Origin: Magallana gigas | Lineage: Eukaryota | NCBI RefSeq assembly: GCF_963853765.1 | Contig: NC_088859.1 | Span: 27,900,001 to 27,964,000, forward strand | Direction of reading: 5' to 3' | DNA length: 64,000 bases | Part shown: positions 3,192 to 44,600 of the stretch, in pieces | Layout: every line of letters begins with the position of its first letter | Numbering within the stretch: the stretch's first letter is position 1 | Position numbers and translations under genes: made by a program | Notes under the pieces: model-generated | Databases searched by the model: none | Seen by the model: the letters and a program-made list of their open reading frames with translations, nothing else | What the model was told of the DNA's origin: nothing

Positions 3192-3239
3192 GAGAGAGAG
3201 AGAGAGAGAGAGAGAGAGAGAGAGAGAGAGAGAGAGAGA
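3192..3239. repeat. (GA)24 microsatellite at tandem-duplication junction 1
   Basis: Direct reading. The left flank matches PGM intron 6 (cf. 43981); the right flank starts the repeat unit. Confidence 0.95.
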
Positions 3240-3450
3240 TATTAATCATATTACATGTAAAAGTATATATATATTTCCTTTAATATTATTTTGATTAAAT
3301 TATAAGGAGGAAAGTAGGGCTTATGTTACTTTATGATTCCTATGAATGATGACATATTTCACTGCCTAGCAGATTGCATGACAGGACATACAAGCTGGTA
3401 AAGGGGCACCTGCTGCTCCCCCCCCCCCCCAGTTAACACCATTTTGACAG

Positions 3451-3476
3451 AGAAATAATGAAGAAAACAACAAATG
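3451..3476 (+). CDS. Candidate 26-nt mini-exon (A GAA ATA ATG AAG AAA ACA ACA AAT G), putative upstream exon of the Tctex1-domain gene, copy A
   Basis: Flanked by the acceptor ttttgacAG and a perfect GTAAGT donor, with an ATG at 3458. Its phase-1 end is compatible with phase-1 acceptors at the start of the Tctex1 exon. Inferred from splice signals only. Confidence 0.45.
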
Positions 3477-38600: not shown

Positions 38601-41600
38601 TTGATGCTACGTGCCTGAACATGAACTGTAAGAATCAAAAGAATGATTTCACTATTTTATAAAAACCTACCTGGTATTCATTTTAAATAAATGTTAAATG
38701 TTTACTTATTGCACAAAGCAATTTTTTAAGATGCGCTATGAAAAAGCAAATGTTTGTTTATTGTGTACAATGCCATCGGTTTCAGAGAGGGGTGATATGG
38801 ATTTGGTAATTAAACCACAGTGTGGTGATCCAGAAAATCGAATCACACTCTGTAGAATTAACAGTATCAAGAAAAGAAAATTGATGGGTACTGTACAATA
38901 TATAATAAAAGCAGTTATTGACTTTATTACCGGTAATAACTAGATAACTATAACATGTATTTCACCTCTCATTCGAGTTGAAGATGATTGAGATAAATAT
39001 TAACCTCTGATGGAAGTAAAATCATACTTGTTATTCAAGTCAATTAATTTTTTATTTATAAGTAAATATATCTATGGCTACATGTAATCACATGACTTTA
39101 CAGATTAAAAAAAATTAATATATGTCTTAAATTACCAACTAATAATGCAAAGGAGTCCTAAAAACATGCATGATTTTCAAAAATTTGACAAGTATTAGTA
39201 TTAAGTATTAAGTATTAAGTATTAGTATTAAGTATTAATTGATAAATTTTGTCTAAAAAATCTTTAAGGTCATGCAAAAATGAGTCCACAATATTTAATG
39301 CTAACTGTGTATCATTTGTCTAAAATTAAGTTTTTCAGCATTAAAAAATATATGTCAATCAGTATGTACATGTAGATCTGTCACTCATGTGATAAGTGCA
39401 GGTGAGGATATATCTAGATTATGTACATGTAACTTATCCATACAATGATTCAGTGGTGTGTAATTTGCTTGTACTTGTCAATAAGTATAAATGTGTTAAT
39501 TAATCAGTATATAGATCTCATCAGTGATCCAACTATTTTTTCTTCCTTAATGCCACGGGGTGTTAGAGTTGTTCCATGCGTAAATATCTCTCTCTCTCTG
39601 ATTGGCTGATTGAATCGCCACATAATATTCGACGTACTGTGGGTACAAGACTGTTACTGTACATTATACATGGCGGTTGAGTAACAGTTTACTCCAGCGT
39701 ATGTACATGTAGTATGGAAAAACCAGAAGTAAAATGACCTCACAAGTATGAGATATACGTATCACCAGTTATGTGTGTGACAGAGATTTTCCTATTGGTC
39801 TTCTTAGCAGCTAGTGTTGAATGCTTTACTCTGAAAACCTTCACCCACCCACCCCACCCACCTTTCCTTCTTGAGTATTACACATCCTAGGCCCAGAGTC
39901 TAGCAAATTAGAAAGAAAACAGTACTCAGGCGTTTAGTTTTGTAAAAGGTAGACTGAGATTTCTGTTGCCGTTGTTCCTATCACAAAAACAAATCCATGC
40001 CCCCCCCCCAACCCCCCAACCCCCCAAAAAAAAAACAATAGTACACCAAAAAAAATCTAGCAACCCCCACCCCCACAATAAATACATGTAGTACCTTTGC
40101 ACCCAGGCCTGTAAGTTCTGTAGTACTTGATTGAGTTGAGATGTACCGGGTATATTATACCGAAACATGATCTCTTGTTGTTGACCAATATGGTGTTGAT
40201 GCTGGAGACACTGACATTTTAATCTTGTTTTCTATACCTCACGTTTCACACTGTTTTTGTGATACAGAATGGATCGGTACTGTAAAATGATGCTTAAGTC
40301 TTCAGATTAATGATATGATCAGTAGAAGTTTTCAGCCAATTAGTTAAGTCTAAACACAAACTTCATGACTGGACAGAAATTTGAGTCTTTAATGTCAACA
40401 TTATATATTTTTTTTTTATTACAATAAGCAAAATGTAATGTTGGGTGAACATGCTTGTACATAAAACTTGAATTTTGAAAATCATGATCTGTCATTGAGT
40501 GATAAAAATATTTCTGTTCAAGATTGTTATTTAGTAGTAAAACAACTTTAACCAACAAGTTCATGTACCGTAATCAGGTTTTGATAGAAAGCAAAAATAT
40601 AGAACCCCAATTTATTCTCATTAACTTTGAAAGCACTGAGGATAGCTATTGTTAAAAAGATGTCAAATTTTTGTGCTGCAATTGTGTGGAATTTTATGAT
40701 ACAATATACAAAAACTTATTGACATACCTGTTTGAGATATAGAGAGCATTTTCCAAGTGAAACAATTAGCACTCAGGCTGGTTTTAATTACGTTGTATAA
40801 CTCTTTATGATACACGTATTACTATAAGGTACATTTAGTTGGTATTATTATTTATACAAAAAGTATCTCTGTTTGATTGATTTTACTTTAATAATTACAG
40901 TTATGGGTCCATATGCCAAGAAGGTGATCTGTGAGGAGCTCGGGGCCCCACAGAACAGTGTGGTCAACTGCACCCCTCTAGAGGACTTTGGGGGCAAACA
41001 TCCCGACCCCAATCTGACTTATGCTGCCGACTTAGTGACAGAGATGGCCAAGGGGCATTATGACTTTGGTGCTGCATTTGATGGAGATGGAGTAGGCTTA
41101 TTTTAATCTTTAAGTAGCTGGGGGGGGGGGGGGGGGTAGAATGAATATGCTGGTTAAGGGTTAAGCATTAAGCATTGCAAACATTTTTATGAAAGTTTAT
41201 AACACTAGAATGCATTTTTATTTCCTCATTTTTTTTAATGTTTTCTTTTTTGAAAGTTTAATGTTTCCATTAATCAGAATGTCTGTTTTTCCAGCGATGC
41301 CAATAAAAAATTATAAAAGTGCAAATTCTTTGGTGGTGCCAACTTGCATATGTTCTTGTGTCATCAAAGAAATGAATTTAGGAGAAACCGCGTGTTCACA
41401 TTTTAATGACCTTCAACACCTGTACTGATCCATAATTCACTAATTACACTGTAGAAATTAATTACGATGCTCTGATATTACAGGACAGGAACATGATCCT
41501 GGGAAAGAATGCCTTCTTCGTGACGCCATCAGATTCTTTGGCTGTTTTAGCACATTATCTAGAATGTATTCCATATTTCAAAGAGACTGGGGTCAAAGGT

Positions 41601-44600
41601 TATGCCCGGAGTATGCCAACAAGTGGAGCAGTAGACAGGTCAGTGATAAGGCAGAGGTGTCCAGAAATATTGGTCATAAGAGAGAGAGACAGAGAGAGAG
41701 AGAGAGAGAAAGGAGAGAGAGAGAGAGAGAAAATGTTTGTGTTATCCCCAGTACAAATTTTAAAATTTTTGAATAAAATTTTTATATATGAATTTTATCT
41801 TCTAATAAAGTACTATTAGTGTCAGTTGTTTGAATATGAAACCTATTGCTTTTATTTATATCAGAGTGGCTAAAGCCAAGAATCAAACTTGTTTTGAGGT
41901 TCCGACAGGATGGAAATTCTTTGGAAACTTGATGGATGCTGGTCGCCTGTCTCTTTGTGGGGAGGAGAGCTTTGGAACCGGGTCAGACCACATCCGTGAA
42001 AAGGACGGCTTATGGGCGGTCCTAGCCTGGTTGTCCGTCCTAGCCAATCAGAACTGCAGTGTGGAGGAATGCATAAAAAAGCACTGGCACACCTATGGTC
42101 GAAACTTCTATACAAGGTTTGGCGAGTTCTTCATTGTGTGATACATATAGAAAATAGTTTAGTTTAAATTTCCCATACAGCAGTTTTCAAGTTGTGTCGA
42201 CTCGAGTAAGAGTTGTTGTACATAAACAGCATACTACACAAGGTTCCATTTAGAGTGCTCTTTATAGTGAATGATACATGTACAAATACACTGTAAAAGC
42301 ATTTTGTATTCAATCATTTTTGAAGACGTGCATATACCGGTATAGTACTAAGGAGGAGTTGTTTTACAATATAGATACTGTAAAACTTGTTTAAAACATG
42401 AACAAAGTGAAAACTTGTTCCCTACCAAAAAAAAAAAAAATTATGAATAGAACAAAGTCACCAAACTGATTTTGAGCCCAGCACTGGAAATATAAATTGA
42501 CCTAATTTATTACAAATAGTTTTCTATCATTAAAAATAATACTTATATAGACATAATTGTTTGAGTGAATTTATTTTCATTGTATTTAAACAGACTTGAT
42601 CTTCCATGTATGCTTGAAAAATCTTCAGCTAGGAGTATGGTGATTTCTCGCTTATTTTTCCCCATTTCCCCATGTACCGGTATTGCAAGAAATCTACCTG
42701 AATATATTTCTATTTTTATATGCCTGGTATCTATATTCTTAAATATAAAAAAAAATTTAAAAGAAAAGTTTAAAGAACAGCAGGTTACCCTTGTTAATTA
42801 ATTAAAACATTAACTATGAATATACCAGCCCAAGAAAACAAAAATAATGCATGAAGACAATAGTGATTTAACATATTTAATGCACAAATGCATCTATGAA
42901 ATATGAATTTGAGAACTGCATATGGCTATGCAAATATTTGTGGTTTGTGTGATGGGTTGTAGGTTTTGATATATGTGTATATTTGAACCCCTTGATAAAA
43001 TATTACTATTTATTATCTCATAATGTGTGGAAAAAAAATTGTTTAATGAAAGAAAGTTCACTTGTACCTCAATTTTTGATGAGAACTGCCAAGTGCTTTA
43101 TTCATTAGTCTAGAAGATAATTATCTGATGAATTAAACACAAGTCCCGTGTAGCCACTTATTCTCCAGGTTACAGAGCTCGGAGGCATATACATGTAAAC
43201 TCTAGCCTCAGTTTAATTTATCATCAGAGAGATTTTTATTTATCATCATATGACCCTGGTTTGTGTGTCAGAATGCCTGGAAGATATTCATTTACTGAAC
43301 TCTGGTCGCAGAAAAATAATTATACCCGCTGCTCCACATGGTTTGGAGACAAGAGCAATTATACCGATCTCACTGGGATAGAGAAAATAAGAATGTACCC
43401 CCTAATGCTGTTGGAAATGATTGTCTTTGGTTTTTCTTGGCAATCATTCTTTAACAGGCTATGATAATTATGTGCTGTGAGTTTGACTTGTAGAAAGTTC
43501 ATCCCCTGCTGGGTCAATGATAAGATTGGGGGGGGGGGGTATAACAATGGATAAAGAGAGAGAGTGTGTCAGTGTCATAGTTCTCTGTTATCTGTGATTG
43601 ACTTTTGACAGAAGTACATATTTCTAAACTAATTGTTCTTTATAATGTTGATAGGTATAGTTAATTGGTCACCCCTGGTATTTACAATGTCTTAGATTAA
43701 CTAATAGTTGAGACATATTAGCTTTAACTATGGATATCAGTTTGGAATTTCCCATTGACTTATTTTGTCACAATTGCAGTGAATTTATTTTTTACCTACT
43801 TGAAATTTTGGCAATAAAGTACATGTAAATATACTTCATGTTAAGGAGAAATGTCTTAAAATAGCAAACACTTAAGAACTCGTGGATAATTGCTTAACAA
43901 TGGAATGTTGTTCTAGATCACGTTTAAACGTTCTATTTCTAGTATTTTTCTTGTGTTGTCTGAAACTGGAGACAGCTAGCATCTCTCTGAGAGAGAGAGA
44001 GAGAGAGAGAGAGAGAGAGAGAGAGAGAGAGAGCAGTCTGTTTTGACAATTGCATTGAATCAAAACTAATAGTTACTATAGAGTTTGTGCTGAATAAAGA
44101 ATAGTTCAGTGCTTCTGATGAATAAAACATTGTTGTAATTCAAGTATGCCAGAGAGAGAGAGAGAGAGAGAGAGAGAGAGAGAGATATGAGATACTTGAT
44201 AGAAGAAATTTACGAAACTTAACTATTCTCTATTCAGATATGATTATGAAAACTGTGAATCAGAACCAGCCAATAAGATGATGGCAAATCTAAATGCATA
44301 TGTTGCTGACCAGTCCAACATTGGAAAAGTATTTACCTCTGGAGACAAGTCTTACACATTAGCCAAGGCAGACAACTTTTCTTACACAGATCCTGTGGAT
44401 CACAGCATTAGTAAAAACCAGGTGAGCAAAAAGAGAGGTTTCAGTGTACAGGAAAAATTGCCCATTTTATCAGAGTACCAGGGCACAGGAAAAAAATATT
44501 AATTTCAAATGAAGCAGATTTCAAATGTACCTGAACAGACAAACTAAAAGATGGGTCTCATTGTTATAGTTTTTTGCAAAATGAAGATACGTGTAGTTTT

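Follow-up and report, generated by a model that had tools for sequence, protein, structure and literature searches.

Tandem amplification of the 5' part of PGM1 in Magallana gigas, with a putatively non-homologous joint at two microsatellites of opposite polarity

The window analysed here is a stretch of 64,000 nucleotides from Magallana gigas (C7:27.90-27.96 Mb), numbered from its first letter, with negative positions lying upstream of it. The PGM1 locus carries an array of five head-to-tail units, in which the repeated block comprises the front two thirds of PGM1, a dynein-light-chain gene and a TRIM-like gene. Units I and II contain PGM1 exons 1-3, and units III, IV and V exons 1-6; unit III starts at about -15939, upstream of the window. 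The features of the window are the following.

1-3191, + strand: tail of unit III, PGM1 exons 4-6 and then the intron-6 left flank
95-285, 678-832 and 1062-1313, + strand: unit III PGM1 exons 4, 5 and 6, with AG/GT splice sites and an open frame
3192-3239, + strand: joint J1, where (GA)24 links the intron-6 left flank to the interior of a repeat element (direct reading, TRF)
3240-5315, + strand: element interior (3240-4862) and 3' terminal direct repeat (4863-5315)
5400-5735, + strand: unit IV Tctex-1-type dynein light chain ORF, intronless, 111 codons, with a stop at codon 22 (Pfam PF03645, E 2e-19)
8633-10369, - strand: unit IV TRIM-like gene, an intact single-exon ORF of 578 aa (Pfam PF00643)
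13476-21964, + strand: unit IV partial PGM1 with exons 1-6 (13476-13718, 16418-16580, 17392-17652, 20788-20978, 21358-21509, 21713-21964), an open frame and canonical splice sites, no exons 7-9, and a 3-bp in-frame deletion in 21358-21509
18536-18618, + strand: poly-G tract in PGM1 intron 3 of unit IV, at which the older joint A has its distal breakpoint
23868-23915, + strand: joint J2, (GA)24, identical to J1 (direct reading, TRF)
23916-26128, + strand: element interior and 3' terminal repeat, unit V
26213-26548, + strand: unit V Tctex-1-type ORF, intact, 111 aa (translation)
29429-31159, - strand: unit V TRIM-like gene, intact, 576 aa
35678-47509, + strand: the only full-length PGM1, 557 aa, from unit V and exons 7-9 (spliced ORF, Pfam, PDB matches); exons 1-5 at 35678-35920, 36282-36444, 37207-37467, 40901-41091 and 41484-41638, exons 6-9 at 41865-42116, 44238-44421, 45724-45858 and 47420-47509
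43989-44033, + strand: native intron-6 (GA)22.5, the distal breakpoint tract of joint J, where contig depth falls (TRF)
44034-44150, + strand: 117-bp intron-6 segment, unique in the genome
44151-44185, + strand: second intron-6 (GA)17 (TRF tract 44152-44185), then TATGAG; an alternative distal break site with ATAT microhomology

The unit periods are 20676 and 20121 bp, as the original prediction stated. In a self-BLAST of the window, 1-4730 matches 20694-25404 at 96.7% identity and 19844-23912 matches 39947-44033 at 94.1%, while the unit middles are 89-96% alike, a similarity far beyond chance. Across the 564-Mb assembly, the left flank (1800-3190) occurs exactly three times, always inside the window, intron 2 five times, and the Tctex region in four full copies and a truncated one; all of these are confined to C7 at 27.85-27.95 Mb and are thus not a dispersed repeat. 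The earlier count of at least three copies is exact for PGM1 exons 4-6 and falls short for exons 1-3, which are present five times. The units are direct copies with one identical junction (joint J at 3192-3239 and 23868-23915; joint A at -30907 and -15947), and the predicted tandem of partial PGM1, with its distal breakpoint at the intron-6 (GA)n, is a true segmental duplication of the 5' part of the gene. Identity between units forms a mosaic, with IV and V sharing 98.8-100% over 5316-8300, both nearest to II at 5916-6516, and V nearest to I over 11916-17300. Such a mosaic may be read as a sign of exchange between units, as expected from later crossing-over.

The product of the full-length PGM1 contains Pfam domains I-III and the PGM1 C-terminal domain, and all four signature loops, including RLSGTGS, are found across domains I-IV. 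Its best PDB matches are vertebrate PGM1 structures (rabbit 1C47, human 5EPC and others), to whose residues 337-428 oyster exon 6 aligns with an E value of 1e-41; the four signature loops are common to both, whereas the oyster gene, with nine exons, has four extra 5' fragments upstream. Units III and IV have neither domain IV nor its loop, and unit II carries a 13-bp deletion in exon 1 that shifts the frame. Only unit V, continuing into exons 7-9, can make the enzyme, and the partial copies, having no domain IV, are most likely enzymatically dead by-products. In the III and IV copies, dN/dS is 0.07-0.19, and the exons (0.3-0.7% divergence) are 3-6x less diverged than the introns (1.9-3.0%). 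For dead relics such conservation is unexpected, as are the canonical splice sites and open frames of both copies.

The Tctex1 sequence and the TRIM-like gene are co-duplicated, as had been proposed, though the supposed Tctex1 exon is in fact a complete intronless ORF of 111 codons; phase-compatible acceptors lie before and inside it. The TRIM-like proteins combine a B-box with a beta-propeller, with no RING match in Pfam, and relatives are named TRIM2/3/71-like or PML-like in the sources. Their ORFs are intact in all five units (dS 0.09-0.19, omega 0.4-0.6), and it is the TRIM-like gene that has survived as intact cargo throughout the array.

RNA reads support the exon 4-5 and 5-6 joints of PGM1, and no exon 6-to-exon 7 or chimeric joint is seen among 52 reads. 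At 42090, 6 of 6 reads have the III/IV-type letter, which may simply be the allele of the sampled animal. These data bear on the possibility that units III, IV and V are functional cassettes, each supplying a promoter and exons 1-6 that are either spliced onto the one block of exons 7-9 or give functional truncated or PGM-Tctex chimeric proteins, with selection maintaining the partial copies. The open frames, splice sites and divergence values of III and IV would fit this possibility, as would the letter at 42090, the acceptors around the Tctex ORF and the NCBI annotation of Crassostrea angulata, which holds models of 429 aa, 238 aa and 294 aa (PGM_I + Tctex-1). However, gene conversion or the capture of functional alleles can also give low dN/dS, the IV-like PGM1 copy of C. 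angulata carries an exon-4 frameshift and a Leu in place of the catalytic Ser, unit II is frameshifted, the Tctex ORF of unit IV is interrupted, and proteins without domain IV are without the phosphate-binding loop. Taken with the RNA reads, this makes functional cassettes improbable, and the narrower idea that the three exon 1-6 blocks are alternative 5' cassettes for the single exon 7-9 block somewhat less probable again. C. gigas Pgm-2 is known for its classical multi-allelic allozyme patterns, and overdominance has been reported. If the narrower idea were true, one haplotype could yield several PGM isoforms differing at charge-changing residues (Q/E, Q/H, K/R, one Phe lost), and this isoform multiplicity, together with copy-number variation, could contribute to both phenomena.

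Sequence reading and TRF agree on the same junction at the two J sites, as originally described: the left flank ends in ...GCTAGCATCTCTCT, followed by (GA)24 and then TATT[A/T]ATCATATTACATG... Equally in line with that description, the third copy passes from the same left flank through (GA)22.5, the unique 117 bp and (GA)17 into the true downstream sequence and exon 7 from 44238. The right flank of joint J, previously called novel, is the interior of a non-coding dispersed repeat element of ~2.9 kb and high copy number, with at least 42 genomic matches on many chromosomes at 92-100% identity (most 95-99%) and a 12-unit array at C2:2.387-2.414 Mb. At 3240-5315 the element is without its 5' terminal repeat, a 320-bp segment and (TC)n, in whose place stand the PGM1 intron-6 flank and (GA)24. 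Five dispersed copies at other loci have 453-bp terminal direct repeats at both ends and unique flanks. Other hallmarks of LTR retrotransposons are absent: the termini are (TATT)AGGTCAC...GTGTCC rather than TG...CA, the 5' repeat is not followed by a primer-binding site of the TGG type, none of five other element loci shows a target duplication (4-6 bp in LTR retrotransposons), and the 2-3 bp duplicated at the element site of the array are too short to count. We therefore classify the element no further than as a dispersed repeat bearing terminal direct repeats.

A resident copy of this element lies 31.7 kb upstream of J1, at the expected ancestral site in unit II, where the inspection of upstream sequence that had been proposed as a check located the right flank at -28424, 98.5% identical and directly preceded by (TC)18-19, the polarity complementary to that of the expected (GA)n. 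Among the matches listed, it is the nearest relative of the copies in IV and V (98.5% against at most 98% at other loci). Units I and III have the empty site, ...GCACCCCACCAAAG; in unit II the S segment is followed by the 5' repeat, and in units IV and V the 3' repeat is followed by CACCAAAG. From these borders, the pieces in II, IV and V appear to be one and the same insertion. Apart from the copies at joint J, 6 of 6 M. gigas element copies read have (TC)n ahead of ATATTAATCAT, as has the resident copy of C. angulata; at joint J the tract is (GA)n. Two such opposite-polarity tracts are not homologous to each other in direct orientation, which argues that joint J is non-homologous, probably a join at the edges of two purine/pyrimidine tracts with a microhomology of 1 nt (A), or of 4 nt (ATAT) if the break fell at the second GA tract. 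Joint C shares TC, joint A has a short filler, and no templated insertion is seen at joint J. The breaks do not fall at random: only 10 GA/TC tracts of at least 16 bp (371 bases in total) occur in 134 kb.

The duplication had been ascribed to a homologous process, ectopic recombination or slippage, acting on two direct (GA)n tracts ~20 kb apart, and a dinucleotide purine/pyrimidine microsatellite is indeed present at each parental breakpoint, with an uninterrupted (GA)24 kept at the joint. Yet the parental breakpoints do not carry the same repeat in the same orientation: the upstream partner is a same-strand (TC)n, as unit II, five further element copies and C. angulata all show. Since (GA)n and (TC)n are homologous in inverted orientation only, an inversion would be expected and not a direct duplication. 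The distance does not fit either, as the resident element is not ~20 kb from J1 and the distance between the original partners was probably two units, or ~32 kb. An origin by (GA)n-to-(GA)n exchange is therefore very unlikely, and a non-homologous joint J is the reading that we retain.

Joint A, upstream of the window at -30907/-30900 and -15947/-15939, joins the older exon 1-3 units. Joint C (44115/36678), in which the first 81 bp of the 117-bp segment are fused to PGM1 intron 2, is found in C. angulata and in the DNA runs X9 and X13. The independent C. angulata assembly GCA_025612915.2 has an identical joint A and likewise joint J, there a (GA)21 whose flanks match those of units IV and V at 99.3-99.9%; that the joint was made once and then copied, as first proposed, agrees with its identity in this assembly and at the two sites in the window. 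C. angulata also has a multi-unit array, but in another unit order, and its unit after J consists of exons 1-3 and then joint A, which matches the first product predicted if the upstream partner lay one unit further off.

The DNA-run data are Logan k=31 contigs, which break at the microsatellite (end at 43977) and so do not cross (GA)24 in M. gigas. Contig word depth, which is not equal to copy number, drops exactly at the (GA)n 43989-44033 in X9 (138 to 51-55), X13 (36-39 to 7.5-8.5) and X1 (31-75 to 27), two or three unrelated runs, of which X1 is probably the assembly's own strain; the steps are 2.6x and 4.6x, and the X1 ratio is only 1.2-2.8. The high-depth contigs of X9 and X13 carry letters and a 14-bp insertion that are both specific to copy IV. 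An assembly artefact, with divergent haplotypes of one unit laid side by side, is hardly credible: the intron substitution divergence between copies (1.9-3.0%) is within the range for oyster alleles, the X1 ratio is low and no read spans the microsatellite where the M. gigas contigs stop, but two haplotypes cannot supply exons 4-6 three times and exons 1-3 five times, gaps are absent, the TRIM-like paralogues differ at dS 0.09-0.19, the depth steps fall exactly at the (GA)n in unrelated runs, and the same joint recurs in a multi-unit array of an independent assembly. The locus does not look like a haplotig false duplication, for which no more than two versions, the depth of a single copy and a joint coinciding with a gap or contig end would be expected, and the false duplication that would have undone the original prediction is unlikely, given the depth steps, the copy-IV-specific contigs and the C. 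angulata joint.

The reading we prefer, with a probability of about 0.72, is that the array is a real, old and structurally unstable tandem duplication, that joint J is non-homologous and was later multiplied, and that the partial copies are most likely non-enzymatic by-products. The ancestral locus would have comprised the S segment, a Tctex-1-type gene, a TRIM-like gene on the opposite strand and the nine-exon PGM1. A first duplication, from the start of S to the intron-3 poly-G (joint A), would have given units with exons 1-3. The ~2.9-kb element, with its 453-bp terminal repeats and internal (TC)n, would then have inserted between S and Tctex in one unit, after which the intron-6 (GA)n and, in an upstream unit, the element's (TC)n would have been joined by their 3' edges (joint J), through end joining or a replicative template switch with the microhomology A (or ATAT at the second GA tract). 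Both breaks would lie at purine/pyrimidine tracts able to form H-DNA and stall forks; a role of H-DNA or triplex structures in the breaks is speculation. Finally, unequal crossing-over and gene conversion would have multiplied and shuffled the units, giving five here and a different order in C. angulata. We infer this order of events, and a II-by-III crossover that would have made unit IV, from a mosaic identity blurred by gene conversion.

With tandem segmental duplications of the NHEJ or FoSTeS-MMBIR type that later expand by unequal crossing-over, the array shares direct head-to-tail units, the reuse of one joint sequence, mosaic identity, and 0-4 nt of microhomology with no extended homology at J, A and C, but its joint J breaks exactly at the 3' edges of two opposite-polarity dinucleotide tracts, one of them inside a mobile-element copy. 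With NAHR between direct low-copy repeats or microsatellites it shares the recurrent junction and the tandem copies, whereas the defining feature of NAHR, a direct same-orientation repeat at both parental sites, is absent in the oyster. H-DNA-forming purine/pyrimidine mirror repeats are rearrangement hot spots, and (GA)n, (TC)n and poly-G at three oyster breakpoints resemble them, a resemblance only, known here from sequence. In the Drosophila Sdic cluster, a chimera between a dynein-chain gene and its neighbour has been amplified in tandem; the oyster array likewise places a truncated host gene upstream of a dynein-subunit ORF, and the C. angulata annotation includes a PGM_I + Tctex-1 model, but no chimeric transcript of M. 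gigas is seen in the 52 RNA reads.

PGM is a historic marker of oyster population genetics (Pogson, 1989; Pogson, 1991; Tanguy et al., 2006; all listed among the references of PMC8872362). The extra copies (four of exons 1-3, two of exons 4-6) are predicted to mimic heterozygosity in any PCR, SNP or read-mapping assay of the 5' two thirds, and unit number apparently varies between animals. The predicted effect on the interpretation of this marker is plausible for DNA markers in exons 1-6; for allozyme bands it is doubtful because the extra copies are without domain IV, and the enzyme bands are probably unaffected by them. Cleanly placed at two opposite-polarity microsatellites, the duplication joint points to non-B DNA breakage rather than homology. 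The locus also offers a dated instance of a species pair reusing the same joints, with J and A common to M. gigas and C. angulata and the unit order not, and it fits a pattern in which intact immune-type TRIM-like genes are amplified and fragments of housekeeping neighbours are carried along.

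The PGM1 locus carries a tandem segmental duplication whose joints are non-homologous and which later grew by unequal crossing-over. One of these joints, J, connects the (GA)n of PGM1 intron 6 to the interior of a repeat element and was found twice by direct reading of the window. The left flank ...GCTAGCATCTCTCT is followed by (GA)24 at 3192-3239 (J1) and at 23868-23915 (J2), with TATT[A/T]ATCATATTACATG to the right at both sites. In the third copy, the same left flank leads into (GA)22.5 at 43989-44033, 117 bp, (GA)17 at 44152-44185 and exon 7 from 44238, and the repeated junction and the passage of the third copy into exon 7 are therefore present as originally described. 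Self-BLAST delimits two full units (3240-23915 and 23916-44033), which are 94-97% identical at their ends and 89-96% in the middle, and the window starts with the tail of a third unit. No N runs occur in the window, which spans G000:C7:27900001-27964000.

The extent of the array was examined in 70 kb upstream of the window. It extends beyond the window and comprises five head-to-tail units (I-V, of which IV and V start inside the window), and PGM1 exon 1 lies at the following positions, with negative values upstream of the window start:

-33640, first copy of PGM1 exon 1
-18675, second copy of PGM1 exon 1
-4745, third copy of PGM1 exon 1
13524, fourth copy of PGM1 exon 1
35726, fifth copy of PGM1 exon 1

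Exons 1-3 are present in five copies and exons 4-6 in only three. Since whole-genome searches return three copies of the left flank, five of intron 2, and four full and one truncated copy of the Tctex region, the array holds all copies in the genome. The original count of at least three is hence exact for exons 4-6, while the upstream sequence and the whole-genome searches raise it to five for exons 1-3. Units I and II stop at a poly-G run in PGM1 intron 3, where a short filler is followed by segment S, the stretch upstream of the Tctex-1-type gene. This second joint type, joint A, is distinct from J and likewise present twice. Segment S of unit I begins at -49422, upstream of which the sequence is unique.

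Pfam searches identified domains I, II and III and the C-terminal domain of PGM1, and a PDB search aligned exon 6 with residues 337-428 of rabbit/human PGM1 (E 1e-41). The searches also revealed a Tctex-1 family ORF and, on the opposite strand, a RING-less TRIM-like gene with B-box and propeller. Unit V spliced to exons 7-9 gives an open frame of 557 codons with all four signature loops. Judged by eye alone, two open stretches that follow PGM1, at 51749-54277 (-) and 58111-62019 (+), resemble protein-kinase (HRDLKPEN motif) and SURP-motif protein exons.

The k=31 contigs of the DNA runs end at the microsatellite, and three other lines argue for the reality of the array, the third being the C. 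angulata assembly described below. Contig word depth, read as a ratio across the joint and not as a copy count, falls exactly at 43989-44033, from 138 to 51-55 in the DNA run X9, from 36-39 to 7.5-8.5 in X13 and from 31-75 to about 27 in X1. X1, which may be the source strain of the assembly, does not differ from the single-copy part of the window. Furthermore, contigs of high depth in X9 and X13 show features specific to copy IV, namely nine substitutions and a 14-bp insertion.

The right flank of J, originally regarded as novel, does occur at both joints, but it is the interior of a mobile repeat, and a search with window 3240-4440 gives at least 42 matches on many chromosomes, most of 95-99% identity. 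In five dispersed copies, this element of about 2.9 kb consists of a 453-bp repeat, 320 bp, a microsatellite, an interior of about 1.6 kb and a second copy of the 453-bp repeat, bounded by unique flanks; J1 and J2 retain the interior and 3' repeat only (3240-5315). The element is non-coding, with a longest stop-free stretch of about 82 codons, terminal direct repeats of 453 bp and an internal C run with (TC)n. Its classification as an LTR retrotransposon was rejected, since neither the defining ends nor a PBS or target duplication were identified. It forms a 12-unit array at C2:2.387-2.414 Mb (G000:C2:2387138-2414206), whose periods are 2.03 and 2.49 kb, and further tandem arrays lie at C4:54336291-54342419 and C9:34267163-34274400. 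The 117-bp intron-6 segment is unique in the genome, which rules it out as a transposon or element copy.

The original prediction attributed the first duplication to ectopic recombination or slippage between two (GA)n tracts and anticipated an ancestral left tract with the same right flank. A right flank with microsatellite is indeed present in unit II at -28424, at 98.5% identity the nearest of all genomic copies, but its polarity is (TC)n. Here the element has a complete 5' side and occupies the exact position of the empty site ...GCACCCCACCAAAG in units I and III, and the corresponding 3' edge of the insertion is found in units IV and V; units II and IV/V therefore hold the two halves of one insertion. 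In unit II the microsatellite consists of a C run and then (TC)18-19, as in the five other element copies read and in C. angulata, and the PGM1 intron-6 tract on the same strand is (GA)n. Homologous (GA)n-(GA)n recombination is rejected on account of this opposite polarity: since (GA)n and (TC)n are homologous in inverted orientation only, direct duplication via homologous exchange between two such tracts is excluded.

A non-homologous origin of J is consistent with its microhomology. One nucleotide (A) is common to both parents; for a break at the second intron tract, behind which TATGAG stands, the shared sequence would be ATAT. The second case would imply the loss of 117 bp between two GA tracts, and the one-nucleotide case is equally compatible. 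Because GA/TC tracts of at least 16 bp hold only 371 of 134,000 bases, two breaks at tract edges are not due to chance. We infer that breaks or stalled forks at purine/pyrimidine tracts were resolved by end joining or a template switch, and joint A at its poly-G run fits this theme.

The upstream partner of J would have been the element in the unit one step further upstream, and the first duplicated piece would have measured about 32 kb, the present distance from the unit II (TC)n to J1. Beside the element, units IV and V have unit II as their nearest relative (97.5% at 5916-6516), and farther on they resemble I or III. Identity between IV and V is 98.8-100% over 5316-8300 and drops to 91-94% over the TRIM-like gene. 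Such a mosaic of identities points to unequal exchange and conversion at a later stage and limits the exact reconstruction of unit history.

A homologous array is present in an independent assembly of C. angulata (GCA_025612915.2, CM046785.1, 26.59-26.77 Mb), which was sampled via seven TRIM-like paralogues. Joint J recurs there as left flank, (GA)21 and TATTTATCAT, its flanks matching those of units IV/V at 99.3-99.9%. Joint A is present in identical form, and one unit has S and an element whose 5' part is complete and includes (TC)n. J and A are therefore older than the M. gigas/C. angulata split, or shared polymorphisms. Behind J, the C. angulata unit has exons 1-3 and then joint A, an order that would follow if J had formed with the element one unit further up as its upstream partner.

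Two additional joints were observed on the C. angulata piece L019 (reverse complement). In joint C (3353-3520; window 44115 joined to 36678), the intron-6 left flank is followed by (GA)19 and by 81 bp from the start of the 117-bp segment, after which the sequence passes into PGM1 intron 2 with a 2-nt microhomology (TC). This joint occurs in the C. angulata assembly and as an identical contig overhang in X9 and X13, is absent from the M. gigas assembly, and suggests additional structural haplotypes. At 5788-6690, PGM1 intron 3 directly abuts two tandem 453-bp terminal repeats without the element interior, a fourth joint type. NCBI models of C. angulata comprise proteins of 429 aa (exons 1-6 plus read-through; domains I-III), 238 aa (exons 1-3; domain I) and 294 aa, which as gene models are leads, not proof. 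Truncated or chimeric PGM models lie on these pieces:

L022 19363-21734, the 294-aa model with PGM_PMM_I (PGM_I) and Tctex-1, spanning a type-A joint
L019/L021, truncated or chimeric PGM
L020, L024, L025, truncated or chimeric PGM

In all five units the TRIM-like ORF is intact, with a length of 576-578 aa, an identity of 84-91% and an omega of 0.4-0.6. Units I, III and V also have an intact Tctex ORF; in IV this ORF is interrupted at codon 22 by a stop, and it is deleted in II, where the equivalent of 4770-5818 (the 3' part of the element and the whole Tctex ORF) is lost at -26906 (G000:C7:27873094). PGM1 exons 1-3 are open in unit I, exon 1 of unit II has a 13-bp deletion, and exons 1-6 are open in units III and IV with canonical splice sites, one Phe codon being lost in IV. 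Exons 7-9 are missing from every partial copy; these copies therefore lack domain IV and the phosphate-binding loop and are expected from their sequence to be enzymatically inactive. Exon divergence of 0.3-0.7% between PGM1 copies, versus 1.9-3.0% in introns, and dN/dS of 0.07-0.19 count against simple decay. Conversion from a functional copy, or capture of a functional allele in unequal exchange, can explain both values. The IV-like copy of C. angulata has a frameshift in exon 4 and a Ser to Leu change in the catalytic loop.

Unit V, the only full-length copy, carries private changes (Gly to Trp in the last codon of exon 1, Glu to Asp, Gln to Glu, Gln to His), from which all other copies and the functional C. 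angulata gene differ, except for a shared Arg in exon 2:

35918-35920, private-change site
36282-36444, private-change sites
37207-37467, private-change sites
42090, private-change site; non-unit-V letter in all three DNA runs, and the III/IV-type letter in 6/6 reads of the RNA run X21

The 52 X21 reads include joints for exons 4-5 and 5-6, and no exon 6-7 joint is listed among them. Their depth is 3-6 over exons 4-6 and about 2 over exons 7-8, and the excess was dropped as a sign of partial-copy transcription because 52 reads are too few. A loose end behind 42765 was rejected as a new splice, since its letters match C3:49668897, a locus sharing a small repeat, which also renders most intron-6 reads (42476-42869) unreliable. 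Contigs of the DNA runs reach word depths of 99-1606 over 42476-42672, which makes this stretch a small high-copy repeat, and RNA reads there come partly from C3:49668897. An in-frame PGM-Tctex product of 566 aa was likewise rejected: phase-compatible acceptors yield 520-554 aa, with weak pyrimidine tracts and no read support.

Literature searches turned up no paper describing PGM duplication in oysters. Tandem segmental duplication with non-homologous joints and unequal crossing-over is of a well-known kind. Specific to this locus are a joint whose two sides lie at microsatellites of opposite polarity, one inside a repeat element, two nested joint types common to two oyster taxa, and the location in a classical marker gene.
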